A DNA stretch of 64,000 bases from Asterias rubens (Eukaryota): assembly GCF_902459465.1 (NCBI RefSeq), contig NC_047074.1, forward strand, positions 9,176,001-9,240,000. The letters run 5' to 3'. Made by a program: the position numbers and the translations under genes. Positions 4,683 to 30,354 of this stretch are shown here, piece by piece; positions within the stretch are counted from its first letter, which is position 1; the number at the start of each line of letters is the position of its first letter. Under the pieces are notes generated by a model that saw nothing but the letters and a program-made list of their open reading frames with translations, did no database searches and was not told the origin of the DNA.

Positions 4683-7600
4683 ATGGACGTTCTGAAGCCA
4701 CCAATTCTAAACATTGATGGCCGTTGCTATCGTTTGAATCCGGTGCAGAGGCCCTCTGAGTGGGTGGAGCATGAAGATGAAATGGAGGGGTACGACGAAA
4801 TGTATGATGGTATGTTGTGTGATGTGGTCCTTCAAACGATTTGGGTACTCTTTACACAAAACACAATGTCCACAGATTAACTTTAAACTCATGTGATAGG
4901 ATTAGTAGAAAGCAATTTCCTTAATAAAAGGTACAGGATGAGGTGCTGTCATTTTTTCTGAGAAATAAGTAAAATAATGTCACAAACGAATAGTTTTCAT
5001 CTGAGTTTTATTTAGCATACAATACGTTTTTCACGCTCAAATATTCGTTGTCGACTGAGCGGAAAATTTTGTTTAGTGACTTGTTTTACGCACTTCTCAA
5101 AAACAACAGCACTTCAGCAAGTTATATTGAAAGGGAAGCCTTCTACCATCATTGTCTTCAAACTGTGTAATTTTAATATTCTGTGGACATTGTGTTTGTG
5201 TTACAAAAAGTACCAAAAGCGTTGTAAGCCAACTTTTTTTTTTTAAACCGATTTATAATTGTTTTAATTCTATATGATAAAACTGTTCATAGCATACACT
5301 TATAATTACCTGTGAATGTTTCATTTCAAAAGGTAGTCCTGTTTTTCAGATCCCCGTAAATCTGGAGCAAGTTTTTTCCACGCAAAAAGAATAATCCCTA
5401 AAGGGAATACACAATCTGAGAAGCGTTTACTGCAGTAAAACAATGCCTCTCAGATCATAGATTTGCGTTTCAATTCAGTCCCTGCTTGACTGCTCAGGTT
5501 TTTCCTAAGTATAAATATTTATACGGAGTTTTACTTCCACCATCATAAAATTGAAACTTATACTTCCTTGTTTTCTCTGCATTGGCTACAACCAGAACAA
5601 ATCATAATGAAATGGTTTTTGCCTGGCACTCTCGAACAAAGCTATTGACAAAATAGGAAGACTGCCAACATTACATAGTTTAGTTGGTAGAGCGCCAGCA
5701 TGTTTAGGTCACAGGTTCAAGCCCCGCTCTAGTCAATTTGTCTTTGTTCAATCCCAAGTTATTTTGAAACTCAATTGCAGATTAGTACCCAGAGGAAAGT
5801 TGTGAGTTTTCAGACATAAAAGAGACTGGCAATGGTTACATCCTAGATAGCTCAATTTGTAGAGTGCCAGCATGTTAATCCGGAGGTCAGAGGTTCAACT
5901 CCCGCTCTAGTCAATTTGTCTTTGTTCAACCCAAACTATTTTTAACCTCAATTACAGATGAGTACAACGAGGACAGACAAAGGTTAAATCCTAGATAGCT
6001 ATCGAGCTTTCTTTGCAACGTCACAGCCCGAGTTTTTGCCAACCCATTGGAAAACTATGGAAAGCCATAAGTGCAAATCAAGAAAAAGATCGCTATTTTT
6101 GGTAACAATGTAACAAAATTTGTTGATTTTGTTTAAAACAAACAATTAATTATGAGAGGTATTTTATTTAATTGAAAGTTTGCAGAAAATGTTGAATTTT
6201 TGTTAAAACGATCTGTTTTTACGATTTAGTGTTTTACTAACATTCGGCCGACCATGCCAACCAAGGCGGTTTGTTTATCAACAATAGAAAGGTCTATAGC
6301 TCAGTTGGTAGAGTGCCATCATCATGAGGTCACAGGTTCAAATCCCACTCTAGTCAATTTGTCTTTGTTAACCCAACAAACTTGGAATCTTGATTGCAGA
6401 TGAGTACAACGAGGAAAGTTGTGAACTTTCAGACATAAAAGAGCGGACAACGGTTACCTCCTAGATAGCCCAGTTGTTAGAACGCGATGTTAATCCAGAT
6501 CACAGGTTCCCTGCTCTAGTCAATTGGCTTTCTTCAACCTAAACTATTTTTAATCTCGATTGCAGATGAGTAGACAGGAGGAAATCTGTGAACTGTTAGA
6601 CGTAAAAGAGATGGACTAAGGTTACACCCTAGATTGCTCATTTGGTTGAGTACTGGCATGTTTATCCAGAGGTCATAGGTTCTAGTCAATTGTTCTTTAG
6701 TCAATCCCAAACTATTATTAATCTCAATTCCAGATGAGTACAATGAGGAAAGTTGTGAACTTCTAGACATAAAAGAGACGGACAAAGGTTACACCCTGAA
6801 CCTTGAGATCCCCAGCGGTTTCTTCGGTCACATCATCGGGAAGAACAAAGAGACAAAGAAGAAGATTGAGCGAGAGACTAAGACGCAGATTGTCTTCCCT
6901 AAGGCGCATAGTGATGAGGATTTGATAGGTAGGGTGTTCGCTTTTAAAACGAAGATAATTTTCAATCTTGGGCTAGTTTGATAGTAGATGCTTAAATAAG
7001 GAGAGTCATGGATGGTTTTCAACATAGTGTTGATTTATTGGCAAAAAGTGGTTTATGCTCCATCTGGTAAGAGCATAGCTGAGTTGGCAATAAGGCTACA
7101 GCATTGACTTTTACTAAGGATGTACTATCAGCACAGATGGCGCAGATTTTAGCCAAGCCAAAGCTGTAGCCGCCAATTCAGACAAAGCCTGACAAATATT
7201 TTGACAATTGAAAACAAGATGCTCCAATCTGAAAATAGACCTAAATGATGTTCATTTGAAGAGGGCGCGTTCGTTTAGAGGTCTAAAGAAGGTTCCTCAT
7301 TGGCCCATCCCGTGTGCCACCCATACATCGATGTGCGTTTGCCGCTTTTATAGCTCTAAAATTATCAGGTCAATGTATAAGGTTTGTTCAAGGTTTTGTT
7401 ATTGTGTTTTTTATTTTGTTCATAGTTATTCGTGGAGAGCAGAAGTCAGGGATCATCTCGGCCAAAACAAGAATTGACGTGATTGTTTCATCTGCCAGAC
7501 AGAGGGAGCCATTCACTCACTTCCTGTCTATGCCGTTCAACAGCGCCCCCACACAAAACAAGTTGCGCGAGTTCACGGAGGATGTGTTGAGAGACAGGAG

Positions 7601-11395: not shown

Positions 11396-13794
11396 TGATG
11401 CAAACATTTTAATGGACAATTGGACATAGGTCTTTTAGTAATGGATAACGTGGCTACTGCATCACTGGGCATGTTTGGGCAGCGACCATTTGTCAACCAC
11501 AAGTCAATGTTCCATGGTGTACCTGCATGCAATACATCATGGGTACCAGGCAAAGTCGCCCAATGGTCGACAATAGTCTCTTGCTCGAACTCGATCATTG
11601 CTGAAGGAATTCCATAAACGCTACCTTGGTGTCGAACTATCTGATGATGGACAATAATATGAGAAAACAAGAATGCTATGTAATGAGTTCCTTTTGACAT
11701 TTTTTATTGCCAAGTGGCTAGGTCTCAGGTGATTTTTTGTTGGAATAAATTACCTTTATGGGCTTTGAGGCATTGCATGGTGAGGTATCAATGTATACTT
11801 GGTTTACGTTTTCTACACCACTTGTACATCTACTTGCTGGATAGACAATGTTCTTTTGAGAACTTGTATTGCTATTTTATATTCTACTACTGTATGCGGA
11901 GTAGATTTTGGGGAATTTTTGAGACATCTCAATTCTGAAAAGAACTGTCCTGCTTTTCTACTACCTCGGCTGAAGGTAGGAAATCAGTCGGGACAACTAC
12001 TTTCTCTTAGTGGAGTGAGGGGACTTCTAGTCATTAACTTCACTGCCGCCGAGTGAGTTCTTAATTGGTCTTTTAAAAATGTGTGTTTACAAACAAACTT
12101 TTCAAAACAGCCTGATGTCGTGATTGAGGGTTTGGAAACAACAAAACAGATGGACATAATACACTACACAGCAGATCTATTGCACTAATCTACAGCAAGC
12201 TGCAAGTTATATTAATTTATTTCATGATATACTCTGAGTACGTTTTAAGTATGATTTCACAATGATTTTTGAATGAGGGACACAAGGAATCGGGACTGTG
12301 CAAGTCTCCAGAGTATTCAAACTTCCAGGACCAAATTGGTCTGTTTGTTTGCTTGTTTGTTTGCTCGTTTGTTGAGATGATCTTCCCATCAAGGGAACTC
12401 GTCAAACTCCCACACAGGGATATAAACACCAAGCTGGCAACAGCCAATCTCTCCTACAAAGATCGGTTTAACGTCAATGATTATGAATTGCACAAATCAA
12501 GAAATTGTGATTCAGTAACTAGACTACAATACTTATTCTAGTCATTGTGAAATTAGTGGTGAGCATTGGGGATTCCAACCCACAGAACCTTGTAATTGCA
12601 ACCACTGGACCATTCTGTTTCTCCTATATCTTCAGTTAAACAGAGTTTATGGCTATAGAAATTACATTGCATTGTTGTGAAAATGAACCTTCAGCCATGA
12701 AATATATCAAAGTAAAAAAGTTTTCAATAAATCATTAAAGAAACATGAGAATAACACTTGACCTACAATGTTTCATTCAATGTTATCATTAAACCTATTA
12801 AATGGTCACAGAAGGTCAGGGGTGACTGGGTTTCTAAAAAGACACCATTCTCGTCCCAAGTTATTATCTTGTAACATTATAAAATTAAGAATTTTTTTTT
12901 CTCGTTTTTGATATTGGGGAGACTTGCACAGTCTATTGCTGATTATCATATACGAATAACAGTTCTGAAACTGAACAAGTTTACACATACACTTGTCATG
13001 CATAGTATAGAATGTACCTTTTTATTCAAGGTTGATTTGATACCAAGGTTGCCATTAAGAACCTTCACTGTATCAATGAAAATTACGAATAGTCAACAGG
13101 CTTCTTTTCAAGTTCCTTCTGCGAAGTTGCCCAACCCCCTAAAAAAATCCTTACCAATATTTACCACTGTTCAAAATATATAGCGGAATTACACAGCATC
13201 GAATTTCTTTCTTATTTTTGGTAAAATAAAATAAAAACAAATGAACTAGCTTGGCCAGATTTAGATCTTCGGTCCCAAAGAATCCTTTGTAGGCAAGTAC
13301 AAAGACGGATACAATAAAAGTTATATGTGAAAGTTTCAACTAAAAAAAGTGTCTACTGAAAACATTACAAAAAAAAACTACAGTATAAAGGCAAGCATTT
13401 ATAATTAAAGAAAACTTGATTTGATCAAGTTATACAATGTTTGGGTTGTCCGTAATTCTTTTTGGTAGTGTTGAATAATCGTGTAACAATCTTAAAAACC
13501 GTGGCTATCTGTTTATGCTTCACAGTTATGGCTCTCCATAGTTTTACTGACCTCGGTTGGCAAAACCCAGGCTGTGATGTTGCAATAAAAAAGTAAAAAA
13601 CATGTATGAAGCACCATTTCATATCGGGGATGATATAAACCAGACTCTCATCTAAACGCAAATGTTTTAAAGTCTGCCTGCTAAACAAAAATGTTTATAA
13701 TTTTCTCAAAATACAATAAGACGTGCTCTTTGATCTACTGCTCCAGTAGTGAGGATACTGTTCCTCAAAACCTATAATTCCACCGGTTACTTAA

Positions 13795-14167
13795 AGACAG
13801 TGGACACTATTGGTAACTGTCAAAGACTAGTCTTCACAGTTCGTGCATCTCAACATATGCATAAAATAACAAACCTGTGAAAATTTGAGCTCAATCGGGC
13901 GTCGAATTTGCGAGATAATAATGTAAAGAAAAAAGCGCCCTTGTCACACAAAGTCGTGTGCTTGCTGATGCTTGATTTCGAGACCTCAAACTTGAGGTCT
14001 CGAAATCAAATTCGTGGAAAATTACTTCTTTCTCAAAAACTACGTCACTGCAGAGGGAGCTGTTTCACACAATGTTTTATACCATCAACCTCTCCCCATT
14101 ACTTGTAATCAAGAAAGGTTTTATGATGATAATTATTTTGAGAAATTACCAATAGTGTCCACTGCCT
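13795..14167. mobile_element. Kolobok-like MITE (TTAA target site, AG..CT termini)
   Basis: ttaa|AGACAGTGGACACTATTGGTAA ... ccaatagtgtccactgcct|ttaa; interior shared with many copies in the window. Confidence 0.8.
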
Positions 14168-14189
14168 TTAAAGGTGGAAATGCCATCAA

Positions 14190-14552
14190 AGGCACTGGAC
14201 ACTATTGGTAATTACTAAAGATAATTTTAGCATAAAATCTTACTTGGTAACAAGCAATGGAGAGCTGTTGATAGTATAAAAACATTGTGAGGAACGGCTC
14301 CCTCTGAATTAATGTAATTTTTGAGAAAGAAGTAATTTCTCACTCAACAAATAAAATACTTCGGCTGAAGCCTTTTACTACAGTGTATTGCATCTGAATG
14401 CATACAAAGTTGTGCAACAAGGGTGTTTCTCTTTCATTATTCTCTTGCGACTTTGATGACCAATTGAGCCCACATTTTCACATGTTTGCTACTCTATGCA
14501 AATGTTGGGATACACCAAAGGAAAATACTAGTCTTTGACGTGTCCAGTGCCT
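14190..14552. mobile_element. Kolobok-like MITE, same family, opposite orientation
   Basis: aggcactggacactattggtaatt ... tgtccagtgcct|ttaa. Confidence 0.75.
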
Positions 14553-15146
14553 TTAAAGGTACTTCCAACGATCTAGAGCTCTCTGTTTCAGACTGTTTTG
14601 TCAGCAACGACTCTCACCCCCGTCATAGAAATGGTGCAATACTGTGTGTCTCAAAAAAAACTACACACTTTTGAAATGGCTGCCAAATAAAAAATATACG
14701 ACTCGGGGGGGGGGGGGGGGGGGGGGAAAGGTTTATAGATGTATGGATAGCTTATGGATTCAACTTTCACATGAGACCAAAAAGTCTTGGGTTAGCACTG
14801 CTCACTGACGAATAAGAAGCCAACATCTTAGAGTGAATTTTGTAAGCTCCGAAGGACTTGCCTCTCACAAATTGGAAGGCTAATTCCTGCGCAACCTAAT
14901 TTTCATACACTTTACAAAAGTGAGCCGTGCTTACCCAAGCATGAATTATTTCAGGACTTATTGGTGTCATATGAAAGTTGAGATGATAAGCTATCCATAC
15001 ATACAGTGTATAAACCTTTTCCCCCAGACTCATCTTTTTTATTCAGCAGCTATTTCAAAAGTGTTTGTATATATTTTTTTATAGACACCCTGTTTAAGAC
15101 CTTATTTTGCGTAGAATGCAAAAGCACTTGCTCTACTTTGATTTAA

Positions 15147-15532
15147 AGGCAGTGGACACTATTGGTAATTACTCAAAGTATCTTTCAGCATAAAACATCA
15201 ACTGGTAACGAAAAATGGGGAGAGGTTGATAGTATTAAAACATTGTGAGAAACGCCTCCCTCTGAAGTGACGTAGTTTTCGAGAAAGAATTAATTTTCCA
15301 CGAATTTGATTTCGAGAACTCAAGTTTAGAATCTTAGGTCTCGAAATCAACCATCTAAAAGCACACAACTTCGTGGGACAAGGATGTTTTTTTCTTTCAT
15401 AGCTATCTTGCAACTCCGACGAGCAATTGAGCTCAAATTTTCACAGGTTTGTTATTTTATGCATATGTTGAGATACATGTACATGTAGTGAGAAGACTTG
15501 TCTTTGACAATTACCAATAGTGTCCACTGTCT
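15147..15532. mobile_element. Kolobok-like MITE
   Basis: TTAA at 15143-15146 and 15533-15536 flanking the TIRs aggcagtggacactattggtaatt / aattaccaatagtgtccactgtct. Confidence 0.82.
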
Positions 15533-15698
15533 TTAACTTACGATTATTGGGCTGCTCTTGGAATGTACAATTCTGGAATAAAATAACACTGTGTATTAAA
15601 ACGCTTACTGAGTAATTGTGACACACAATTATATCTATATCTACAGTTTCTCTTTTTCAAAGAGAAGTTTGCTGAGAAAGAACAATTCACAATTAAAA

Positions 15699-16050
15699 AT
15701 GTAAACTTAGTACGATTAAATGTTAACTTAAAGCTGAACTAGTTTTTTTAAAACTTAAGACTGTAAGAACAAGCCATCATTAATATTCTTTTTAACAAAC
15801 ACACACAAAGTTAGAAGATTTCAGTAACATTAAAAAAAAAATAGATGTCAGACTAGTACTGAGGGATAAAAAATACAACACACAATTAATAATGTAAACC
15901 GAGTACGATTAAATTTGAAAGCTTTTCTATTTTTTTTTTTAGCTTAAGAACAAGCCATCATTTATTTCCTTGTTAAGAAACGCACACAAAGATAAAGGCA
16001 ATTTTAGTTACATTTAAACAAAAAATAAAAAAATGTCAGACTACTACGGA
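15699..16050. repeat. Direct duplication of ~190 bp downstream of the STAND gene stop codon
   Basis: aatgtaaac..gtacgattaaat..aagaacaagccatcatt..aaac(a/g)cacacaaag..aaaa(a/ga)tgtcagacta occurs twice (~15699 and ~15891). Confidence 0.75.
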
Positions 16051-16441
16051 GAGATATTGAATACAATTGTTTGTTACCCCTGTACGATGGATGTTAAGCA
16101 CTGTTTGCTCTATACCTTCCCCCGAGTCGGTAGTGGGGTTGGGATTGGAACCCCTCACCCTTGCAACTCCCCAAATTGTTGGATCTTCACATATGACATA
16201 ACACAAACTATTGCAATCCAGTAAAGCATATATAATTAGTTCATTTTAGTGGGCTTTAAACCCCCAACTGTTGCAATTTCTTAACTTTTGGAATAAAACC
16301 CAAAGAATTGCAATGATGTAAACCCTCATAATTATCACATTTAAAATCTATCCTTTTTACTGTGTCAGACTCTCACTCATGTTGACCCAACTACATTACA
16401 CTTTGACCTTTGACCTTGATCTCTGACCTTGACCTCTGTCA

Positions 16442-19400
16442 CTAGCTGATGACACAGCGTGGCCACTTGTAGCTCACCTCTTCTTCGTCTTTAAAAGTCA
16501 TGAAATAAAATTCAGGTAGAACAAAATTATTTTAATTTTTTTAGCAACAATTAGAGGTTGGTCCTTAAAAAAGTCGGATTGAAAACTTTGCATGGCGGAA
16601 GTATTACTAAAGCCCTTTTTACACTAAAGGAATACCTGGGAAATTCTCTGGAAATATTTAACCCTGCTCAGGGATAGAATTAAAGGCATTAACCCAAGGG
16701 TAACATGTTTTTCATAACACAACACACTGGACCTACATTTATGGCTTTATACATCCCATCCGAAGGACGCAGCAATAATGATTAAGGACTAAAGTGTCAT
16801 GACCGTAACTCAAACCCACAATATGCTGTTGATCAAGCCAGGAACACACTCTCTTCATCATGGTAAGTGCACTGGGTTCTTACGAGCATTAACGCAGCAC
16901 ATGGGACCTACATGTACATGTATGGCTTTACACATCCCATCCGAAGGACGCAGCAATAATGATTAAGGACTAAAGTGTCATGACCGTAACTCAAACCCAC
17001 ACTCTGCTGATCAGAAACACCAGAGCTTGAGTTCGGTGCTCTTATCTGCTCTGCATGTATGAGACATTTTCCTGTAGAGCACCAAGTAACTGTTTACAAG
17101 GTGCTGTGGCACAATATGCGGCACAATATGCTGTTGATCAAGCCAGGAACACACTCTCTTCATCATGGTAAGTGCACTGGGTTCTTATGAGCATTAACGC
17201 AGCACATGGGACCTACATGTATGGCTTTATACATGTACATCCCATCCGAAGGTCGCAGCAATAATGATTAAGGACTAAAGTGTCATGACCAGGACTCAAG
17301 CCTACACTGATACACCAGAGCTCCAGTTTGGTGCTCTTATCTGCTCTGCCACAACACTTGACGAGAGGTACATGTACATGTACACTGACAAGAGGTAAAG
17401 GTATCAGGCATATTTGATCCATGGACAACAGTAGTGCAATAAATATTTGAGCACAACGGCTGCCCTACGTACTTGTTCATATGGTGGTTAAATGTTTGTG
17501 TTCAAGCTATTTTATTAAAGACACTGGACACTACTGGTAATTGTCAAAGACTTGTCTTCGCAGTTGGTGTATCTCAACATATGCTTAAAATAACAAACCT
17601 GTGAAAATTTGAGCTCAATTGATCGTCGCAGTTGTGAAATATTAATGAAATAAAAAGTCGCACCATGGTCACACGAAGTTGTGTGCTTGCAGATGCTTGA
17701 TTACGAGACCTCAAATTCTTAATCTGAGGTCTCAAAATCAAATTCATGGAAAATTACTTCTTTCTCGAAAACTACGTCACTTCAGAGGGAGCCGTTTCTC
17801 ACAATGTTTTATACCATCAACCTCTCCCCATTACTCGTAATCAAGAAAGGTTTTATGAAAATACTTATTTTGAGTAACTACCGATAGTGTCCAGTGCCTT
17901 TTAATCACCATTTTTCTGATTTTTCGATGGGCAAAAATAAATAGGAAAAGTAGGAATAATTTCATGCCTGGGCGAAGAAGGGTTGACACTTACCGACTGG
18001 AGCGGCTGGTGGGAAATGAACTGTGATATTGTCGTCCAGTCTCATTTTCATGGAGAACCCAGAAACGCTCGTGATGCTGGAGTCCGTCTCCACATAGTCA
18101 TCCGCATCATTGTTGGAACGTCTTTTCTTGCCTTTCGGCTTGGTCTCTATATGTGCATGTACGTCTCCTAGGAAATATACAAAAATCATATGATCATTTG
18201 CAAATCTTACAAAGAAAAAGACAAAAAGTCATAGTGTAAAAATCTAGAAATTTAGCTTTCCTTCATGTTCATCCCTGATCGTGCAACAATTTTGCATTAA
18301 AGGGAAGGTGTACACGTTTGGTAATTACTCAAAACAAATATTAAATTAAAAACTGACTTGGTAACGAGCATTGGGGAGCTGTTGGTAGTATACAACATTG
18401 TGGGAAACGACTCCCCCTGAAGTAACATAGTCTTTGAGAAAGAGGTATTTTCTCACTAAAATAATTGAAGACTTCTACCTATGTAGAAGTCTTTTATTTC
18501 TATCTGAAAGCACACATGACACAAATTTGCCAACAAGGGTGTTTTTTCTTTCATCATTTTATCGCAACACCGATGACCAATTGAGCTCAAATTTTCACAG
18601 GCTTGTTATTTTATGTATATGATGGTATACACCAAGTGGGGACACTGGTCTTTGATAATTACCAAACGTGTACCTTCCCATTAATTATTTCCCTTCTCCT
18701 CATTGAATGAACTATTTTGTTTATTCTTGGAAGAATATATAGTTTGGGTAGTTATTCACCCAAACAACGGAATCTGAGAAACAGAAATGATTCTTGCAGA
18801 AGTCGTTTCTCAAATTTGTGAGTGTTTGAGGTCTTTTTGCGACCAGAGATGCAAATGGTATTTCTTTTTTAAATATGACATAATGAAGATTGCCCCAGAG
18901 CCCAAGCTTGACCAACAGCCCTAGCCTAGGTTTGGGCAACTGGTGGAGGTACAGGCTGACTTACTCTCCTGGGGCAAATTACTCTCAGCAGAATCTACTC
19001 GACGATGAAGTTTGGCCTCGCCCTCAACTGACGAATGGCGCAAATTACTATCAGCGGGAGTTACTTGACGATGGAGTTTGGCCTCGTCTTCTACTGAGGA
19101 ATCTGTGCTTGAACAAGATCCCCTCTTCCTTTTCAACAAGGACTCACTGTCAGTTGCTGAAGAATAGATAACACAAAAAAATAAATATACAGATTCTTGC
19201 TAACAAGTCCAGGAACAAATTAACTACTCATTTGTGACACGCTCTGTGAAAATGAGTCACATGTACATGTAGGCAATTTCAAGAATTGAGTTATATGAAT
19301 GGCTGGAAAGAAAACATCAGCAGCAGTAATTTGGTATGTGTCTAAGCTTTGGGGTGTATCGCGTTGCTGAGTTACTCCTGTTTGAAATAAGCCACTACAC

Positions 19401-20352
19401 CATTTTTTGTGAAAAACGAATTACAAGTAAAATGAAATTTTTTAAACTACCATATCGTGCAAAAGGATGCAAATTAGATGACCACAAAATGACCACAAAA
19501 TTGTTGTATTTGAAGCTTTATTGCCTAAAAGTAAGTGTTCTAAAGGTTAACCATGCAACTATGTTTTTTTTTATTTGTTTTTTTATTACATTTTCCACAT
19601 TAAACTGTCCATAACTTAATAATGCATTGGGCGAAATCTGACTCATTTTCACAGAGTGGGTCACATTTTTGCAATGTCTCAGTTCGCTCGACTGTAATAT
19701 TCTAAGAGATGTCTTGAGACTTCCAGAGCAAGTCTCAAGTCCAAGTATCAACATTTTTAGCCCAAGTAATAAGTCAAGTAAAAAAAAAAATTCTCATTGA
19801 TCAACTTCTGCTTGTTTTTCATTCATGCCTACAACGTTCTGCAGTCCTTAGTGGCTGAAACATTTGCACCACTCTTGTCTCAAGTCAAGTTCCCCATCTT
19901 TCAATTCAATTTTCAAGGCCATCTCCATTTGCCATTCAAGTTCCATGTTGTTCAGGTCAAGCCTTAAGTCAAATCCCCAGTCTTTCAGAGCAAGTTTCAA
20001 GTTATCAGGCCCAAAGTATTTTATGTCAAGTAGTTAAATCTGAAGTGTTTCAGAGCAAGTCGAAAGTCAAGTCTCAAGGTCTTTCAAGTCAAGTCTTTTA
20101 GGTCAAGCCTCAATTCAAGTCTGAAGTGTTTCAGAGCAAGTCCCGAGTCAAGTCTAGGTCTTTCAGGTCAAGTCTCACGTCTTTTAGGTCAAGTCTCAAG
20201 TCAAGTCTGAAGTGTTTCAGAGCAAGTCGCAAGGCAAATATCAAGGTCTTTCAAGTCAAGTCTCAAGTCAAATAAGAAGTGTTTTAGAGCAAGTCGCAAG
20301 TCAAGTCTCAAGGTCTTTCACGTCAAGTCCAAAGTCTTTCAGGGCAAGTCTA

Positions 20353-20434
<82 letters not shown>

Positions 20435-23400
20435 TGAAGCATTTATTTAGCGCTCTACGGAGAACAGAGCGCTTTACATGAGACTATGACAACAAAAGAC
20501 AAACAAACAAACTAGGCTGGGTGGGGAAAAAGAAATGTCTTTTGAATAGAGGCTTTTGAATACAGGCCTCTCTCAGACCTGCTGGGAGCTCATTCCATAG
20601 GCGGGGGCAGCTATGGAGAATGAGCTTGTCCCAGCTTTCCGTCTACATGTAGTTCTAGGAACGGAAAGCCGGGTCTGGTCAGCTGATGAGCGGAGACTTG
20701 CCTGTATTCATCAGCAGTATTGGAGTTGTGGGAATGAACAAGTTCAACCAGATATGATGGAGATTGGGTGAGGAGGATTTTGTATACATGAATGAAAAGA
20801 GAGGTCTTGAGACTTCCAGAGCAAGTCTCAAGTCCAAGTATCAACACTTCCAAGCCAAGTATTAGAAACACTGGACACATTTGGTAATTGTCAAAGACCA
20901 ATTTCCTCACTCGGTGTATCTCAACATAATATGCACAAAAAACAAACCTGTGAAAACTTGAACTCAATTGGTCGTCAAAAGTGCGAGATACATGTAATAA
21001 CAGAAGAAAAAACACCCTTGCCACACAAAGTGTGAGCTTTCAGATGCTTTTTATACTTCCAACAGCTCTCCATTGCTCGTTAGTAAGTTGTTATGCTAAA
21101 CATTATTTTGAATAGTTACCAATAGTGTCCAGTGCCTTTAAGTCAAGGACAGATTTTCACAATGGAAATATTTCTCCTTGAGGATTGATTCTGCTATTGA
21201 TGCAATCAAGTGAAAGAAAACTTTACATGTTGAGATTGACGAGTCCGTCTCACTAGCATCTTGGACTTCCAGTTTGGGCTTGTGCTGGTTGCTCTTATTC
21301 TCTGCTTCCTGGAAAGAAAATAAAACTCATCAGAATTCTCGGAGTACTTTAATAATATTATTAATAATAGCCAGTTTATTTTTCTAGCGCTTTTCACATC
21401 CGCAGGGCGTCCCAAAGCGCTTCACATTATTACCCCTGGTCACTGGGCCTTGATTTACTCCTTAAACCACCATCTCAGCTCCCTGGTGGGGAATATGCAG
21501 CCTGTGCAACATTAATATGCGCTACTCGGCTAAATCAATCACAAGAACCATCTCTGCCCTCACAGGTACCCATTTACTCCTGGGTGGAGAGAAGCAATTA
21601 TAGTTTAAGTGTCTTGCTCAGGGACACAAGTGTAACGACCAGGATTCAAACCCACACTCTGCTGAACAGAAGCACCACAGCTTGAGTTCGGTGCTCTTAT
21701 CCACTCGGTCACGACACCCTATACTTTACTACACTCTTTACTGAAGACAGCAAACAAAGTAACTCGGCTGTTGTAAAAGCACCTATAATTTTAAACTCGT
21801 TACTCGTATTCTGAAAACGAAAATACCAGGAGACGGAAAAATTTTTATTACGGTGATTTTTACACCTCGTTTGTTATAATCGGTCAAATATTGTTGTCGC
21901 AGTAAGTGCTTACAGATGAAAGTGCCAATTTTCATTGTTGCAGTAACTCCTATTGACAAGAACCGCTTTTGAAACTTCCCGCTATTAACTTCACGCTGAA
22001 TCAGAGGAGAGACGATCATGTCAATAGGAGTTCCTGCAACAATGGAAATGGGCACTTTTCAACTGTAAGCACATACCGCGACAACAACACTCGACCAATT
22101 TTCACAAACAATGTGTCAAAATCACCGTGAATAAATTGTCCGTCTCATGGTATTTTCATTTACAATTTTTAGTAACAATTTTAAAATTATAGGTGCTTGT
22201 ACAACAGCTGAGTTACTTTTTTGCTGTCTGCACATTATAATGATTTACTACACCACCAAAGTTCTTCAAGTCCGCTTTGAGGTGACCGTGACCCAGGCTT
22301 TCATTACATTTTATTGATTCTAGTTGTGAATCCAAGGACTCTCAGAGAAGTGAACGTCATCACTGTACTAGCCAAGAACCCACTGAAGAAAACACACGGA
22401 AGAAAGGTTCAGTCTTAGATGTTGTAGGAATACCAAAGAGAATTATTCCCTGGGAAACCCATCTAGTTAGGTAGAGACTAAAAACTCAATCCACATAGTG
22501 CCCCTGTAGTGATTTTAATCAGGGCGGAAGGCGAGGGAAGATACCACCACGCCGACGCCTTAGTCATTTAGCTTTTAAGCCATTGGACAATTTCGGTAAA
22601 CATATTGTCCAAAGGCCCACACTTCTTGTATCACAACTTATATATAAAATAACAATCCTGTGAAAATTTAGGCTCAATCGGTCATCGGAGCCGGGAGAAA
22701 ATAACGGGAAAACCCACCCTTGTTTCCGCACGTTACACCGTGTCATGACATGTGTTTAAAAAAAATCTGTAATTCTTGATGTCGAGAATTGATAATTGTT
22801 TTAATGTTCTCTCAAAAAGTAAAGCATTTCAAGGAATAACATTTCAAGAGAAGTCTTTCACCATAACCTTCTGTAAACCCTGTAAGTTATTTGTAAATCT
22901 GTGAACCTTTTTTTTTTCTTTTTCCGAAAGTGTATAATGGCTCTAATCAACCTTATATTTTAAGATGTTTTTTAATTTTGTATTTTTTTTGTATTCCATA
23001 TGCAACAAAGATAATACACAGACAACAAAACACAGACTTAGCTACCCCCCCCCCCAAAAAAAGTAAAGATATTTATTTGATCTTACCCTGAAGCGTCGCT
23101 TGTAAGCCGACAGAGTCGTCGACTTCCCGAGTTTTGTCAGCAAGAACTCTAGCTTGTTCTTGAGTCTCGGCCAATCGATGCTGTGAGCCATCCCTTTCCT
23201 CCAGAGCTCCTCCTCCATCGTCAGTGCCTCGTCCAGGTACTTCCGGGCCTCCTTGTAGTTCTTGTTGACGAGGTTGAGCGAGCCGACGAAGTAGACGCTG
23301 CGAGCGGTCAGCGGGTGTACCTCAAGGAGACGTTTACGGCCCTCCATGGCCTGTCTGGCGATGGGGATTGCATCATCATAGCTGTTGGTTATAAATTAGT

Positions 23401-25987
23401 GATTTACTCAACATACTTGTAAAACAAACTCTAGGTGTTCGGATGTGTGAAAGGGGTCGTTTCACAAGTACACTTTACTAGTCACAATAAAAAAAGTTCC
23501 AATCAAAGCAAGCAATCGCTTTGGCCTACATGGTCACCAACACACCCCGTTTTGTGAAGTACGTAAAGCCCTTTCATATGATGTATAGATTGTCAAAATA
23601 GCTTTTGTGGTTGAAGAAATAGAAACTGATGAATAATGACGACTGGAGAAGAGACTATCTAACCAGAAGGGAAATGTTTGTTGAAAACGCCTTGAAAACA
23701 GGCTTAAGCAGAGCTATTTATAGAAAAATACTAGATTACATGTCTGTAACATCATTTTTTTGTGTCAATGTAGTATAGCTAATTATATTTAATAACATTC
23801 ATTTTGGTTTTACCCTTGCGCCGATGTATGTTATGAAAAAAATCAGACAATACTCTGGTGAGATTTGAACCCACGAAACTGTGTCTTTTTAGGGCAATGT
23901 CATACCAACAAGACCACCCAGATTGAAAGAAACACCCCCCCCCCCGAAAAAATATAATAAATAAAATAAAATAAAATAAAAAATAATGGTACTAATAATA
24001 AAAAAAACCTGTAGCTGAAACTTTTGAAGCTATTTGCTTACTTTCCCATCTCGTAGTAGCTCATAGCAATATTCTTGAGGGAAGTAAACATTTTGTCCGT
24101 TCCTTCCATTCCGAGCAGTCTCTCCTGTTCCATGGCCTGTTTGTAGTAGTCCACCGCACCTTCATAATCTTCCATATCATGGAGGCAGGTACCTACACGA
24201 AGATAAGAAAAACTAATTATTGAAGGAACTCCAACCTGTATGCCGGCTGGCCAAAGGCTACAGAAAAGATCTGTGAAGGGCGCCTCAAGCTTGCTGGGCA
24301 CTGTGTCTGCCACTCGGAGATTGACACTTGCCCAACCATCCTCTGGGAGCCCACACAAGGCAAGGCTTCTCATGGGAGAAGATGTCTCTCCTTTGCAGAC
24401 ATCCTGAAAAGAGACACCGGCTTAACCAGCGCTGAGGAACTACATTACGCTCCTGCATGCTGGATTTTTGGCTTGAATATCAGAGACACTTTTCAACTAG
24501 AATTTTCTGCGAAACAGCTTTATAAAATTGGGCCTGTATAGAACATAAAGTCATTCATGTAATGATGTACACGTAGGTATGTTTTTTAAATACATACAAA
24601 AGGAACCCAGTTATAGTTACAGCAAAGAGAAGGGGGTTTGCCCTGGTGTTTCTGGCATGGTCTGGCAGCATGGGTCACCTTGCAAAGGGGTGGTTTCTCA
24701 AACTGTTTACTGGACCAAAAAACATTGTGCTAGACAAGAACCAAAATGAGATAGAAACTTCTTGAGCCCTGACAGCATGCATTTTAACTGTTTTCATTTG
24801 GATACATAAAGACGGACACTATTGGTAATTGTCAAAGACCAGTCGTCTCCCTTGGTGTATCTCAACATATATGCACAAAATAACTAACCTGTGAAAATTG
24901 GAGCTCAATTGGTCGAAGTTGCGAGATATCAATGAAAGAAAAAACACCCTTGTCACATGAAGATGTGTGTTTTTTTTACTGAGAAATTACTTCTTTCTCA
25001 AAAACTACCTTGCTTCAGAGAGAGCTGCTTCTCACAATGTTTTATACTATCAACAGCTGTTGAGATACACCAAGTGAGACGACTGGTCTTTGACAATTAC
25101 CAAAGGTGTCCAGTGTCTTTAAAAATGTATCTTGTAATTACTTCTTACCTAAATTCATGAGAAATGTAGGTACTTCTAAATGTTGTCCATGAGCCCCCGT
25201 CTTCCTGCGACAAATAGCTAGCGCTTTCCGGTAACAATCTTTCCCTCTCTCCTTCTCGCTTCTGATGAACGCCGGAGCGAGCCCGGGATCGATCATCGCT
25301 TTGTCTTGGTAGGCTCCACCAAGAGAGTTGTATGCCCGGGCGGTCAAGAGGTCGTCTTCTTTCAGGTGAGCCCGACGGATGGCCAGACATCTTTCGAGCT
25401 GCGGGATGGCGTCCGCCCATTTTCTGTTTCGAAGGTAGATGTCTCCGCGGAAGTGATAGCAGGTGGCGAGGCCGAGTTGTACGCCGATTGTCGTTGTATC
25501 CAGCTTTTTCAATTCGTCTTCAGCTTCTTGAATCATAGGCAGGAGGACTTCGACTGTGTGGCCAAGGTCCATCAGTTGGTACACCTGTACAAATCAATCA
25601 ATCAAGCATAGGCCTACATAATTATTTACAAAGCGCCTTATAAATCGAAGGTTTGCTCAAAGGCGCTAAGGCACAGAAGAGATCAAACAATTTTTAGCTG
25701 TGTTGAGGGATGTTGTGTCCATGGGGTGGACTTCAAAAGAGTCCCAAGATGATACTCCAAAGTTAGGACTATCTTTGTTAAATCAAACACTGTAGACTTG
25801 CAAGTTTAATCTAGTTTGGTTCTATATCATGCATATAGAAAAAGTGATGTGGCATGTTCTTGTCAAAACAATCTATGGTGAGCAGGAGCTATTTGATCAA
25901 CATTAGTTGTCTCTGTCCAGCACTCAGTGCAGCATGTCCATAATGTAATTCGGGGCTTGTTCATGAAAGGCCTTGAACATGAGAATG

Positions 25988-26027
<40 letters not shown>

Positions 26028-29000
26028 AAACTTATAAAGCGCACAAACCTAAGTTGAGAGAAATCTAGAACATGTGGTATAGAATACAATATTACAAATG
26101 CAATATTTAATGATGACCTTGAAGTTGATCCTTTGTTGGATTGGGAACCAGTGTACATGTAGTTTGATGAGTTCTGGGGTGATAGGGTCCAACTTGTGTT
26201 TATATCTACTTGCGTTTATATCTAAATACATATAGGATTGAAATTTTCAAAGGGTTAAAAAAAAAAAAAACGATTACTAAATTTTCACAGGTTTGTTATT
26301 TTTTATATCAGTTGTGATACACGAAGTGCAGCCCTTTGGACAATACTGCTTACCGAAAGTCTCCAATGGCTTTAAACAAAAACTGCTTCATACCTCATGA
26401 CATTTGCTCTCGGCATAAACCAGCATCTGGCCATGCTCCTTAGCCGACAGGGCTCTCTCATGGTAGAATTTGAGACGGTCCTTGGTGAAAAACAGCATCT
26501 CCACGATGAGATACAGCCAATAGATCGCGTCTGGTACATGAAACTCTTTGGAAGTCTTCATTATGTTCAGAGCCTGCAAAAGTGTAAAGGATAGGTACAT
26601 GTAGATAATTCTTGAAGTTTCATTCCAATCATAAAATAAGGGAATCAATGTGTAGTGAAGAGGTCTTCAAATGGTTTAAACCCAACGAGGCCTGGTTCTT
26701 GATCATTTTACCGTAAAATAAATGCAAAAAATTAAAATTGTTCAATCATTTCTTTCAACACAACACCCCTCCAGCTATGAAATGGTAAGGCCCTCGGGTG
26801 AACAATTCCTTATATGGGAATGCTGTGCGCGTTATGCGTGTCGCGTGACGTGGCACAACTGTTTTAGCCGTTGCTCTTGAAACTGTCTGCGGTTAATTTA
26901 CATGAGCCTTGTGAAAATGTCATCAAGTCCAGTTGCGAGGTTTCAGCAAAAAATTGTGCATTTTCACATCATGTTTTTTTTGTGTGGCATGCAAGTACAT
27001 GAAGTAAGAAATGATGATCTGCTCTAGTCTTCCTTTTCCCATGACTTCATTTTTTTCTCCTGAGTATTGGTACTGGTAAGAAATTTAGGTGAGCTTTTCA
27101 GAAACTACATAAAAACAATAAATTGCTATTTATTTTTAACTTGCCTCTTGCTGGATGCTCTTGTAGTGCAATTGTTTATTTCGTGCTTCTGTTTATGTTC
27201 TTTTAAAATATTAAATGAATAGTAGCACTTAACAGAGTTTATAAGCAAGAGGTGTGTTATGCCTCCCTAGTGGAAAGTATTTTTGTATTTTAGTCTTTGA
27301 ATATCTTGTATTTTGTACTTGTACTTAAATAAATATTTTTATATCCTAATGTTTTTCTGTAATTTTAAAAAATAGTATATATATTTTCTTATGCTCTGTA
27401 ATTTTAAATGCAATTCAGCCTCTGGCTGCCAAGTTTGGATGTTTTTAAATAAACCAATAATAATAATAATCTAGTGGCTTCTTATCATAGCGCTTAAATT
27501 CGTCACTCAGTGATCCTCATGGTGCTCCAACATTCAGTATTACATGTACATGTATAACAACAAATTTGCTTTTACTTATCACTGATAGCAGGCATGAAAC
27601 TGTAACTTGGAGGAGATGACAAACTCCAATGGCCTTGTTCAAAGTTTGTTCAAGTTTGAATGGCTCAAATGAGAATACAAAAAGAGGAATTCAGCTTATC
27701 AAAGGAAAAGTTGCATACATGTGATAGTAATTAAAACAAGCATATCTGACAAACCTCAGAATAACTCTCCTCACCTTTATGTAGTTGGCGGAGTCTTCCT
27801 GAAGGTTTCCTAGTGCTGCCACTGCTCTGCTCTGCAGCAACTTGGCGAGCTTCTTCATCCTCTTACCGTAGTAGTCCACAAAGAGCATCTCGGCTTCATT
27901 GAAGAGGGTTTCCATCTCGCCCTCGGTCTCTTGGACGAACTGCTGGACGAACGAGCGCAGCAAGAGATGCAGGCTGTAGCGTGTGCTGTCCTCCTTGGAT
28001 TGCGACCACCTGGAGTCCGTCTCCTGCTTGCTGTCCAGGAGGCTGCGATACTTGAGAGCCTGCAACTCCAGTTGTAGCTCCACCTGCTGCTTACGTCTGT
28101 AGCCAAGAATCACACGGGCAACCTTCAGGGTGAACGTTCCTGGAATCACGGCCAGCTTGATCAGATTGCGTCGTTTCACAGCCGGCAGATTCTGAATGGT
28201 GTTCTTGAGGCAGGGGCCGATCTGGTCGCTCTGCGACAGCCCGAAGTGAGAGAGGGCCTTGGTGATGTTGAGGCCTTGCTCCCTGTCGCCTGAAGCTGGT
28301 GAAATGTACCGGAGGAGGTCCTTAGGTTTGACTGTCTGGTCTTGGAGGCGGCTGGCGACTACCTTGAGAGCAAGGGGAATCTTGCTGCAGAGGCGTACAA
28401 ATGCTTCTGCATCGTCATCCACTGCAATGTTAATAAAATAAACAAACTAAATGTACATCATCAGCAGAAGCAATCAAAGTAATGCCATCAAGCATAAGGA
28501 GTAATTTTTCAGAGAATAAAACTGAAAACAGTTGAGTCTAGAGCACCGGATTCAAACTCTGTTGTTTCTGATCAGTAGAGTGTGAGTTCGAGTCCCGGTC
28601 GTGACATCTGTGTGCTTCACAAAGTAAGACATTTAACCATGATGCTCTGTCCTTCGGATGGGACGTAAAGCCGTTGCGCCACAGCACCTTGTTAACACCA
28701 TTACAAGGTGCTATACATAAAAGAAGCAGGCCCCATCATTCAAACAGAGTCCCACACCTTGCAGGAAAATATTGTATGTTGAAGCGCCTTGAGCTGACGG
28801 ATAATGCACGCTATTTGTGTAAAATAAGAAGCCACTATTATTAATATGTGTAGGCCCTCACCAAGACGTGTCTTTCCAGCGTGGTATCTGACCATCTCCA
28901 CAGCGCTCTCCATGTCCAGTTCGTTCTCCCCGTCCAGTCGCCAGCAATCCATGGAGCCTTTCTTGACTGGTATTTTCTCTACTCCGAACCGTGACGTGAT

Positions 29001-30354
29001 GAGCAGCTTTAGCCGCTTGTTCGCCAGGTTTGTGATATTCTCCAGCATTGAGACGAAGTCTTCGTAGGTTGGGTTCGGGAAGGCTCCCGAGCCTGGATCT
29101 AAAGGGTCATCAACACTGTCTAGGAACAAAACAGCACCACCTAAAAAAGAAAAGAAAGAAAAACATTATTTTCCTAAGGCATATGCACCAGCAGTGTAGG
29201 TCTCAAGACCAGTTTTGCCGGTGTCGGGTCTCGGTGTTGGGTCTCGGTACTGTACCTTGTGGTCTCGATCTTGGTCTTTGGCTCAGTCTGGGATCTTCAG
29301 GTCCCGTTTTCAGTCTTGGTCTCGGACTATCAGGTCCCATTTCTTTGCAGCGCCTCCTCAGATATTCAAAAGAGATTATTACAGGATGTAGTCAACAGTT
29401 TTTCTCAATCACCCCTTTGTCTCGAGCTTGGTCTGGGTCTTTTACCTTCAGGTCTCGGACTATCGGGTCTCAACTACAACGCTGCACTGATATACAATGT
29501 ATACATACACAGACTGGCACAAAGTACTCATCTTCCAGGCTAGCCTAGCTTCTTTGCAGAGCCTCCCCTACAGATATTCTGTACAGGTGTTATCATGGTA
29601 GATTTCTCAACAGTCTTTCTACTCTTTGTATGAACTACATGCCTCTCTATTCAGTGACAAACTATCATTTTGAGTGGAATCAAATTAGGAGCCAAAACAT
29701 AAGGTAGGTTTAGTCTCCCTTTTTCTTACCATGCTCTGCTGGGTCGAAGGACCTCAACTTGCCGTACATGACTTCCGGGTCGTAGGTACGACTTTCCACT
29801 CCAAACGCATGCATGATTGCAAAGAAGATTGCCTCAATGTTCTTCAGCTCCCGCAGATCCACAAAGATCACCTTGTGGAACTGTCGGAGCCTGAGGCATA
29901 CCTCGTTCGCCAGGCGCGTCTTTCCGGTACCCGGCATGCCAGCGACGCAGACCATGTGCACATGGTCGTAGGAAGTGTCCAGGATACCAACAATCTGGTC
30001 CATGATGTCACGGTGTCCGAAGAATGGCCCGTCGACGGAGGAGCATCGTATCTTGAGTTTCCGAGTCACAGCCTGGCGCTCTCTCTCGTACTCGTCCAGC
30101 GACTCAAGAATGTCGATTCGCTTCAGGGTGGTCAAGCACATCCGCAGGAGCTCTGTGTCACCCTCGTGGATTTGGTTCTCTCGTTCGAGTACTTCAAACA
30201 ACTTCAGAGCGTCCCCGTTGATGGTGTCGTAGTTGGGCCCCAGCCGATCACGGAGATACAAGACGGCTTTGTCTACGTCGTCCTGGACCAACATGTCGGA
30301 CATGTAGACAAGGAGCCAGCGAAACCTAGAACTGACTAGTTCGGAAGCGTCCAT
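16442..30354 (-). CDS. DED - NB-ARC-type STAND NTPase - TPR repeat protein with C-terminal CaaX (CVIS), 11 coding exons, ~1035 aa
   Basis: Exons in transcript order: 30354-29730, 29140-28862, 28421-27775, 26573-26394, 25584-25149, 24192-24042, 23381-23087, 21308-21227, 19156-18965, 18167-17994, 16488-16442. All GT-AG and phase-consistent; 3108 nt. N-terminal DED-like region (FRWLLVYMSDML..DALKLFEVLERENQIHEGDTELLRMCLTTLKRIDIL). Walker A GMPGTGKT, Walker B VLFLDSVD, sensor-1 LLITSR, GLPL-like CSKIPLAL, MHD-position LHLLLR. TPR-like helices (LTARAYNSLGGAYQD; LGTCLHDMEDYEGAVDYYKQAM). The last four exons (tail) are less certain than the core. Confidence 0.88.
16715..17350. repeat. Locally duplicated SINE-like segment (catcccatccgaaggacgcagcaataatgattaaggactaaagtgtcatgacc three times); family also at ~21380-21720, 28530-28720, 57290-57530
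   Basis: Direct repeats starting at ~16753, ~16933 and ~17239. Confidence 0.75.
17519..17899. mobile_element. Kolobok-like MITE in intron of STAND gene
   Basis: ttaa|agacactggacactactggtaattg ... gatagtgtccagtgcct; shared interior. Confidence 0.78.
18300..18680. mobile_element. Kolobok-like MITE variant
   Basis: ttaaagggaaggtgtacacgtttggtaatt ... aattaccaaacgtgtaccttccc inverted termini. Confidence 0.72.
19720..20350. repeat. Degenerate (TCAAG)-rich minisatellite; related tracts at ~1085-1195, 11030-11120, 29200-29480
   Basis: Recurrent caagtcaagtct / ttcagagcaagtc / aggtcttt units. Confidence 0.75.
20354..20800 (-). mobile_element. 3' fragment of an L2/CR1-clade LINE with (ATT)n tail
   Basis: Frameshifted minus-strand VYKILLTQSPSYLVELV ... 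FSIAAPRLWNELP, typical of the L2/CR1 ORF2 C-terminus, then aagcgct..agagcgctaaataaat and the (AAT)~26 tract at 20354-20432. Confidence 0.75.
22570..22945. mobile_element. Second TTAA-type MITE family (AGCCATTGGAC... termini); further copy at ~38052-38415
   Basis: ttaagccattggacaatttcggtaaacatattgtccaaagg ... gaaagtgtataatggct; near-identical interior at 38052-38415. Confidence 0.75.
24808..25120. mobile_element. Kolobok-like MITE, internally deleted
   Basis: aaagacggacactattggtaattgtcaaagacc ... ttaccaaaggtgtccagtgtctttaa. Confidence 0.72.
25985..26200 (-). mobile_element. L2/CR1-clade LINE fragment with (ATT)n tail
   Basis: Minus-strand DPITPELIKLHVHWFPIQQRINFKV resembles the HITP.L..LHWLPI..RI.FK motif of L2 ORF2; adjacent (TAA)~12 at ~25988-26024. 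Confidence 0.65.

Follow-up and report, generated by a model that had tools for sequence, protein, structure and literature searches.

The locus examined here raises the question of whether an animal NB-ARC-TPR sensor carries its own C-terminal lipid anchor. The gene lies on the minus strand of a 64,000-nucleotide (nt) stretch of Asterias rubens DNA (assembly GCF_902459465.1, contig NC_047074.1, positions 9,176,001 to 9,240,000), which as a whole is called the window, and positions below are those of the window unless another locus is named. It comprises 11 coding exons from 30354 to 16442 (3108 nt, 1035 codons plus stop), and the gene model was obtained by splice-site and frame analysis and checked against orthologues. 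The product is an NB-ARC-TPR STAND sensor with a death effector domain (DED). From the N-terminus it consists of the DED, an NB-ARC STAND ATPase and TPR repeats, and its tail of about 164 amino acids (aa) ends in CVIS, which a first-pass annotation of the sequence had read as a CaaX prenylation motif.

The CaaX box is encoded by the last exon, the coding part of which spans 16442..16488. The acceptor of this exon is ttttaaAG|AC at 16490-16489|16488, and the donor of the preceding exon is CCAGTCG|GTAAGT after 17994, in phase 1. Joining 18167-17994 to 16488-16442 yielded a single open frame ending ...FPPAAPVDEEEVSYKWPRCVIS (also written ...HFPPAAPVDEEEVSYKWPRCVIS), to which the last exon contributes (D)EEEVSYKWPRCVIS and the stop. 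Its codons are GAA GAA GAG GTG AGC TAC AAG TGG CCA CGC TGT GTC ATC AGC TAG, with the conserved Trp at 16465-16463, the CaaX box (TGT GTC ATC AGC) at 16456-16445, its Cys (TGT) at 16456-16454, its Ser (AGC) at 16447-16445 and the stop TAG at 16444-16442. In the translated mRNA (...PRCVIS*, in frame) the Cys is thus the fourth residue counted back from the C-terminus. The key residues lie within a micro-exon (44-47 coding nt) that scans for open reading frames (ORFs) miss.

Four RNA runs were mapped on window positions 13450-19400. Runs X1 and X2 are from the species of the window and stem from independent studies and years; X3 is from a closely related organism. A 3422-nt contig of X1 (record 3) consists of 19156-18964, 18166-17994 and 16488-16403, and a 2047-nt contig of X2 (record 12) of 19156-18964, 18166-17994 and 16488-16207, the latter extending 235 nt beyond the stop. 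Both contigs splice 17994 to 16488, cross the TAG and enter the 3' untranslated region (UTR). The 1-nt offset (18964/18166) is due to a G common to both sides, and the GT-AG rule sets this junction at 18965|18167. Record 19 of X3 has the same join of 19156-18964 to 18166-17994 and carries 86 more 3' letters beyond 17994. Since three introns were spliced out at canonical sites, the contigs are not of genomic-DNA origin. The mRNA ending in ...YKWPRCVIS* is confirmed, and the coordinates, phase and peptide given for this exon by the first-pass annotation were correct, as was the junction 17994->16488 that it had proposed to look for in RNA.

Read-through of exon 9 to the stop at 18921, as an alternative ending, was rejected. 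Contig depth in the bin 18823-19021 was 3.82 and 4.67, which is the exon share alone (13.1 or 16 x 57/199), so no contig backs read-through to 18921, and the contigs splice at 18965|18167 and use the CVIS exon. A donor-like site within the last exon (GAG|GTGAGC) was unused in the spliced contigs.

The domain order predicted for this protein was borne out by Pfam matches to DED, NB-ARC with its P-loop and TPR, together with the fold matches of an orthologue. The DED scored 42.6 bits against a cutoff of 35.9 and covered profile positions 1-82 of 82; its charge-triad motif RxDL, present in the family consensus, reads KRIDIL in the window protein, with Ile replacing Leu. NB-ARC was marginal when exon 1 was searched alone (23.6 bits, cutoff 23.5) and clear in homologues (P0018, 34.4 bits; P0028, 31.8; P0011, 31.4). 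The ATPase motifs are intact, since GMPGTGKT, VLFLDSVDD, LLITSR, KIPLAL and RYSLHLLLR are all found in the spliced protein. In a 14-member family alignment the columns G141/G144/G146/K147, D218/D221, T259, P319 and R447/H451 were invariant or nearly so, R447 and H451 being invariant. The term 'NLR-like' used in the first-pass annotation holds in the loose sense (NB-ARC plus TPR) and fails in the strict one, in which an NLR has NACHT and LRR (Ting nomenclature; PMC3879445). Pfam NACHT remained below threshold (14.8 bits, cutoff 26.7), no Pfam LRR match was found in the window protein, and its repeats matched TPR only (TPR_10, TPR_12, TPR_1); strict NLR membership was thus ruled out.

Structure and disorder were taken from the AlphaFold2 (AF2) model of the Acanthaster planci orthologue, as a proxy for the window protein. 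This model is confident for residues 9-880, and its last 123 residues (881-1003) have a predicted local distance difference test (pLDDT) score below 35 and no secondary structure. A Foldseek search with it against the PDB returned 6mfv (5.5e-14), Apaf-1 1z6t (5.5e-10), CED-4 8jol (1.5e-9) and tomato NRC, and the nearest reviewed proteins by fold were AfsR (1.5e-19), a fungal NLR-like protein and nephrocystin-3. Because the last 123 residues of the orthologue are predicted to be disordered, the C-terminus should be accessible. The tail of the window protein is of low complexity and rich in Ser, Asp, Glu and Lys (16% Ser, 19% Asp plus Glu).

Relatives were collected using phmmer with exon 3 against 1.84 billion representatives, which gave 38 proteins, all matching at the same relative position. 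CaaX endings were found in Acanthaster planci and Patiria miniata (both ...EWPRCIIC), the brittle star Amphiura filiformis (...SWCRIS), the sea urchins Diadema antillarum (...DWNKSSCHVM), Lytechinus variegatus and L. pictus (both ...NWDKSLCRVM), two groups of Branchiostoma DED-NB-ARC-TPR proteins (...SRCQLQ in group 1, ...GWRYYCTVQ in group 2), the chiton Liolophura (...DWLRYYTKHCNIL, ending CNIL) and the sponge Oscarella pearsei, in a TIR-NB-ARC-TPR protein (...RGCMVQ). Each Branchiostoma paralogue group retains its ending across 3-4 species or hybrids, and in the echinoderm orthologues a Trp usually stands 2-5 residues upstream of the Cys. Every CaaX-ending member has I, V or L at the a2 position and S, C, M, Q or L at X. 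The tail is otherwise too diverged for alignment except for a few blocks. The RefSeq models of Acanthaster, Patiria, Lytechinus and Diadema contain the ending and are named 'uncharacterized'. A search with the chiton protein matched only itself. A profile search with the family alignment was dominated by bacterial NB-ARC/TPR proteins and brought in no further members from animals; these matches were used as a background set, in which none of the 132 bacterial relatives had a canonical CaaX.

In A. planci the same phase-1 intron precedes a terminal micro-exon of 44 coding nt that also ends in a CaaX. Between the two micro-exons the Pro and Cys codons differ synonymously, and the two replacements in the box (V to I and S to C) preserve a valid box. 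An ASCC1-like gene lies downstream of the receptor gene in both species (window ~5672-6800), so orthology is supported and micro-synteny is conserved across asteroids. In the A. planci locus L002 this neighbour (14937-18318) is on the opposite strand and encodes KH_1 and AKAP7_NLS domains. From the shared phase-1 intron and micro-exon and the recurrence of CaaX through the family, the sequences argue that the terminal box is not a chance ending. The echinoderm orthologues and distant homologues that retain it also answer the concern, raised in the first-pass annotation, that orthologues might lack a terminal CaaX.

An ending of this kind could still be unlipidated, in a soluble protein, being either fortuitous or under some other constraint (as a degron, for instance, or because its Cys has a redox or metal-binding role). 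CaaX-like endings occur in ~1-2% of proteins and not all are modified, according to an excerpt of PMC10541624; several family members are without the motif, and the annotated Holothuria protein ends in CSPS, a poor box. Opposed to this are the exact box CVIS, a proven farnesyltransferase substrate, the restriction of a2 and X in every CaaX-ending member, the persistence of the box where the surrounding tail has diverged beyond alignment, its recurrence in four phyla as against none of the bacterial relatives, and its position at the end of a disordered tail. We regard an unlipidated Cys as the least probable of the alternatives considered, and prenylation of the protein in vivo as likely. The box fits the pattern for farnesyl (a2 aliphatic, X one of S/M/Q/A/C, with L/F for geranylgeranyl). 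CVIS is the proven farnesylation box of the antiviral sensor ZAP-L, in which farnesylation moves the sensor to endomembranes and is essential for activity, and the association is weak and salt-sensitive (PMC8568172).

We therefore propose the following mechanism for the sea star receptor. Cys1032 would be farnesylated by protein farnesyltransferase, with the usual subsequent removal of -VIS and carboxyl-methylation. Through its long flexible tail the monomer would then have a weak, reversible hold on endomembranes or the plasma membrane, on their cytosolic side. On sensing of a ligand by the TPR domain, NB-ARC would exchange its nucleotide and oligomerise. The oligomer would cluster several farnesyl tails, giving a firm membrane grip by avidity, and would cluster the DEDs, nucleating DED partners such as a caspase-8-like protease or FADD at the membrane. 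Lipid attachment, target membrane, avidity, ligand and DED partners are inferred. We judge this reading as a whole, in which tethering to membranes is the function under selection, to be probable; its least certain step is the avidity platform.

That membrane attachment is under selection is argued by two Ptychodera flava DED-NB-ARC-TPR relatives without CaaX (P0015 and P0011). One has a transmembrane-like, tail-anchor-like helix (Kyte-Doolittle 2.31) ending 14 aa before the C-terminus, and the other, with 6 Cys in 12 aa, has the kind of basic Cys cluster at which palmitoylation typically occurs. Three C-terminal anchor devices would thus occur in one family, from which it can be argued that attachment to a membrane is a selected property.

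Several points weigh against this reading. Outside the eleutherozoan echinoderms the CaaX is patchy: the conservation that the first-pass annotation had proposed to examine is seen in asteroids, a brittle star and sea urchins, and the motif is missing from the annotated models of crinoids, the annelid Owenia and the coral Porites and from several hemichordate models. No hidden exon with a W..CaaX ending was found within 10 kb downstream of the gene of the crinoid Anneissia. Oscarella lobularis is truly without CaaX, the next gene starting ~180 nt past the stop. When CaaX presence was mapped on the family tree it required 8 changes, against a mean of 8.5 for shuffled labels. The tree itself follows the species tree, and the window protein, which is 70% identical to that of Patiria, falls among the asteroids with 100% support. 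On this mapping a common ancestral origin is plausible, and the data speak neither for one gain nor for several independent ones. Near-identical sister models that differ only in CaaX presence (the old S. purpuratus model and Amphiura isoform X2) point to missed micro-exons, alternative isoforms or real turnover; these two models may have missed the CaaX micro-exon. The placement of exon 8 (21308-21227), outside the read-covered stretch, is a prediction from frame and homology. Beyond the mRNA itself, lipidation, assembly on a membrane and recruitment of DED caspases or FADD are what we infer, as the first-pass annotation did.

Three observations on the family were made alongside this survey. 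In Holothuria leucospilota an ORF end ...HEWLCLIM* (locus L004, 31440-31487, 3.7 kb downstream of the annotated stop), in which a Trp precedes a canonical CaaX, was considered as a possible missed terminal micro-exon and not accepted, its acceptor being weak and its intron phase differing from that of asteroids. At the O. lobularis locus (L003; 1-7171, 11780-14865) the gene ~180 nt downstream of the TIR-NB-ARC-TPR gene is a second gene, of AAA_22 type, and a gene with a faint CARD match lies upstream, so that STAND or death-fold genes may form an array at this locus. In the Amphiura filiformis protein XP_072023153 (P0007) the tail contains, after the conserved blocks and ahead of ...WCRIS, an inserted OTU-like cysteine protease domain (residues ~672-764; Pfam OTU 2.4e-12, GDGNCFF). 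Either a deubiquitinase is genuinely fused to a prenylated death-fold sensor or the gene model is a merged one.

The strength of the membrane contact also weighs against constitutive anchoring. Over the last 20 residues the net charge is -2, with no adjacent palmitoylatable Cys or polybasic patch, and a lone farnesyl lacking such a second signal binds membranes weakly, as in ZAP-L (PMC8568172). Given a disordered, acidic tail end of this kind, the single farnesyl should bind weakly and reversibly. The farnesyl might then serve mainly as a switch or protein-binding handle that is released only on activation, as is known for farnesylated GBP1 and for PEX19; at rest the lipid would lie in a pocket of the TPR/NB-ARC body of the same molecule or be bound by a prenyl-binding chaperone. 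The length and flexibility of the tail would allow it to fold back on the body, the conserved Trp just upstream of the Cys could join a recognition surface, and PEX19 farnesylation acts allosterically on cargo binding, as described in an excerpt of PMC5353646. No pocket was identified, however, and AF2 gives the tail no definite position (pLDDT < 35), and the relatives that swap the CaaX for a transmembrane-like anchor or a Cys cluster point to membrane attachment as the selected property. A switch of this type is accordingly judged unlikely, while being the most credible of the alternatives to tethering.

The tail also holds two basic clusters, KRKR and KPKGKKRR, that resemble a nuclear localisation signal (NLS) and could send the protein elsewhere. 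A basic cluster followed by a Ser-rich acidic stretch was found in all echinoderm orthologues, even those without CaaX, as KRKRGSCSSTD here and as KRKRRANSSTD, KKRRASTSSSE, RRKRKSSSSAS and RKRRDSSS elsewhere; this conserved module looks like an NLS or a phosphorylation site for a basophilic kinase or CK2. CaaX and basic clusters together might direct the protein, lamin-like, to the nuclear envelope or inner nuclear membrane in place of cytoplasmic membranes, and the pairing of NLS and CaaX is the targeting logic of lamins (work cited in PMC8568172). The clusters are, however, 55-125 residues away from the Cys, have no verified aligned equivalent in the CaaX members of amphioxus, chiton and sponge, and might just as well serve in phosphorylation by a kinase or in lipid binding. 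It is also established that DED and NB-ARC platforms (Apaf-1, CED-4, DISC) and caspases act in the cytoplasm. Nuclear-envelope targeting is for these reasons considered very unlikely, and tethering to cytoplasmic membranes is retained as the preferred reading.

A broader interpretation is offered only tentatively, and we consider it rather doubtful. C-terminal anchoring may be an ancient selected property of metazoan death-fold NB-ARC-TPR sensors that was later lost in vertebrates, the anchor usually being a farnesyl or geranylgeranyl CaaX and sometimes a tail-anchor helix or a palmitoyl Cys cluster. Such proteins might be self-contained, receptor-independent death or immune platforms. Their oligomerisation, driven by a ligand, would add up weak lipid anchors to a firm hold on a target membrane, for example that of an organelle or of a vacuole containing a pathogen, where DED or TIR signalling would be set off.

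The remaining exons, all on the minus strand, were placed as follows. Exon 1 (29730..30354) starts with the ATG at 30354, encodes the DED (residues ~11-92, with the RxDL-like KRIDIL; Pfam DED 7.5e-11) and the start of NB-ARC with the P-loop GMPGTGKT, and ends in phase 1 (CATG|GTAAG). Exon 2 (28862..29140), set by AG/GT sites and frame, is in phase 1 at both ends and holds Walker B (VLFLDSVDD) and the sensor-1-like LLITSR. Exon 3 (27775..28421) covers the ARC and winged-helix region, in which KIPLAL is GLPL-like and the His of RYSLHLLLR is MHD-like. Exon 4 (26394..26573) is a helical linker ahead of the TPR region, placed by AG/GT sites, open frame and orthologue alignment. TPR repeats are encoded by exon 5 (25149..25584; splice sites, Pfam TPR_10 7.7e-10 and TPR_12 8.4e-10) and by exon 6 (24042..24192; Pfam TPR_1 3e-7), for which frame analysis gave the acceptor GTGTAG|GTACC at 24193-24194; an upstream AG suggested by the long ORF 24038-24373 is in the wrong frame and was rejected. 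Exon 7 (23087..23381) contains the last TPR and the capping helices and ends in phase 0 (TTCAGG|GTAAGA).

The tail starts with exon 8 (21227..21308; 82 nt, ...EAENKSNQHKPKLEVQDASETDSSIST). A model without this exon was rejected, as exon 7 ends in phase 0 and exon 9 requires phase 1. A strict splice-site scan between exons 7 and 9 gave no candidate, and the 82-nt exon was found by a relaxed, frame-constrained AG..GT scan. It aligns residue by residue with the Acanthaster and Patiria proteins and is consistent with the 2970 nt of the X1 contig that lie upstream of 19156. Exon 9 (18965..19156) encodes the Ser-rich part of the tail with the conserved basic KRKR, and is supported by contigs of X1, X2 and X3 and by orthologue alignment. 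Exon 10 (17994..18167), found in three RNA runs, encodes the basic KPKGKKRR and the conserved blocks ETDSSITSVSG and HFPP. The coding part of exon 11 is covered by contigs of two RNA runs and has its homologous micro-exon in A. planci. The 3' UTR (15509..16441) is shown to at least 16207 by X2 record 12 and probably extends to ~15509, where an interspersed repeat starts; further contigs cover 15509-16438 (X1 record 2) and 15511-16177 (X2 record 11). A scan for poly(A) signals found AATAAA at 15966, and a 13-nt tandem repeat at 16403-16438 breaks some contigs.

Repeats are frequent in this part of the window. Within exon 9 a 66-nt tandem duplication (18970-19102, minus strand; 2 copies, 82% matches) repeats a 22-aa unit, SSVE[D/G]EAKLHR...SNL. 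At this point the alignment is gapped in Acanthaster and Patiria, which indicates a lineage-specific expansion of the disordered tail. Interspersed repeats fill introns and the 3' flank at 13650-14450, 15040-15640, 16830-17030, 17430-18030 and 18230-18820, and their ORF fragments share ...RSRNQI[RH]GKLLLS[QR]KLRH[CF]RG.... Their summed contig depth was 10^4-10^6 in all RNA runs, and they are therefore very abundant or transcribed genome-wide. One set of copies explains why the last intron, ~170 nt long in A. planci, measures 1.5 kb here. At 20032-20434, in the intron that separates exons 8 and 9, a complex minisatellite (GTCAAGTCTCAA-type, with periods of 12-86 nt) precedes a perfect (AAT)27 microsatellite.

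The location of an innate-immune or cell-death sensor largely decides what it detects and kills. Known NOD/STAND receptors reach membranes by N-terminal acylation, S-palmitoylation, polybasic patches or transmembrane partners. In full-text literature of incomplete coverage no prenylated STAND, NLR, NB-ARC or NACHT receptor was found, either under these names or under the domain architecture, in agreement with the first-pass annotation, which knew of no animal receptor of this type described as C-terminally prenylated. The sensor chassis and the targeting signal are each known; their combination is conserved and undescribed. It occurs in a near-single-copy DED-NB-ARC-TPR gene that sea stars, brittle stars and sea urchins share, and amphioxus, a chiton and a sponge offer parallels. 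For a death-fold sensor of invertebrates that is deeply conserved and uncharacterised, the CaaX provides a specific hypothesis; it would connect the mevalonate pathway with death-domain signalling outside vertebrates, and it is a simple experimental handle on the sensor.

Among known systems, Apaf-1 and CED-4 share the NB-ARC STAND ATPase, an N-terminal death-fold adaptor and C-terminal repeats, and were among the top fold matches. Apaf-1 is soluble and is activated by cytochrome c. The window protein differs from it in having a DED in place of CARD, TPR in place of WD40, and the disordered CaaX tail of ~164 aa. Zmasek et al. 2007 (PMC2246300) described NB-ARC proteins from sea urchin, amphioxus and Nematostella where CARD has given way to DD, DED or TIR, and WD40 to TPR; the words prenyl, CaaX and farnesyl are absent from that paper. 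The NB-ARC-TPR STAND proteins of bacteria, archaea and fungi (AfsR, MalT-like, PH0952/6mfv, the fungal NLR-like protein) have the same NOD-TPR chassis and were the best structural matches, but carry no DED and no CaaX, the latter as counted in the bacterial background set. To our knowledge bacteria have no CaaX prenyltransferases.

Nephrocystin-3 is the closest reviewed animal protein by fold over the NOD-TPR body, and one hemichordate homologue was automatically named 'nephrocystin-3-like'. Membership of NPHP3 was ruled out (TPR_NPHP3 16.5 bits, cutoff 100; NPHP3_N 16.3 bits, cutoff 24.8). NPHP3 is without a DED and acts in cilia, and the window protein starts with MDASEL and has no Gly2 myristoylation site. 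A covalent lipid that puts a STAND or NOD-type protein on a membrane, as predicted here, is known from several cases: the plant NLRs RPS5 and RPS2 are N-myristoylated or palmitoylated (PMC3801107), nephrocystin-3 is N-myristoylated (PMC6678300) and NLRP3 is S-acylated, according to an excerpt of PMC11392533. All four, in contrast to the window protein, use an N-terminal myristate or an internal or N-terminal palmitate, and none a C-terminal isoprenoid.

The identical C-terminal box CVIS is found in ZAP-L (the long isoform of ZC3HAV1). ZAP is a zinc-finger/PARP RNA sensor, the GBPs are dynamin-like GTPases, and GBP1, GBP2, GBP5 and OAS1 p46 are other prenylated innate-immune proteins; CNIL, the ending of the chiton protein, is presumably the geranylgeranylation box of human GBP2. 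Neither ZAP-L nor the GBPs are homologous to the window protein, and they have no STAND ATPase and no death-fold domain. The death-inducing signalling complex (DISC; death receptor, FADD and caspase-8) is a DED platform at a membrane that activates DED caspases by induced proximity, as is proposed here. Its membrane link consists of a transmembrane death receptor and a DD-DED adaptor, whereas in the sea star protein one cytosolic polypeptide would combine the TPR sensor, the NB-ARC engine, the DED and its own lipid anchor.

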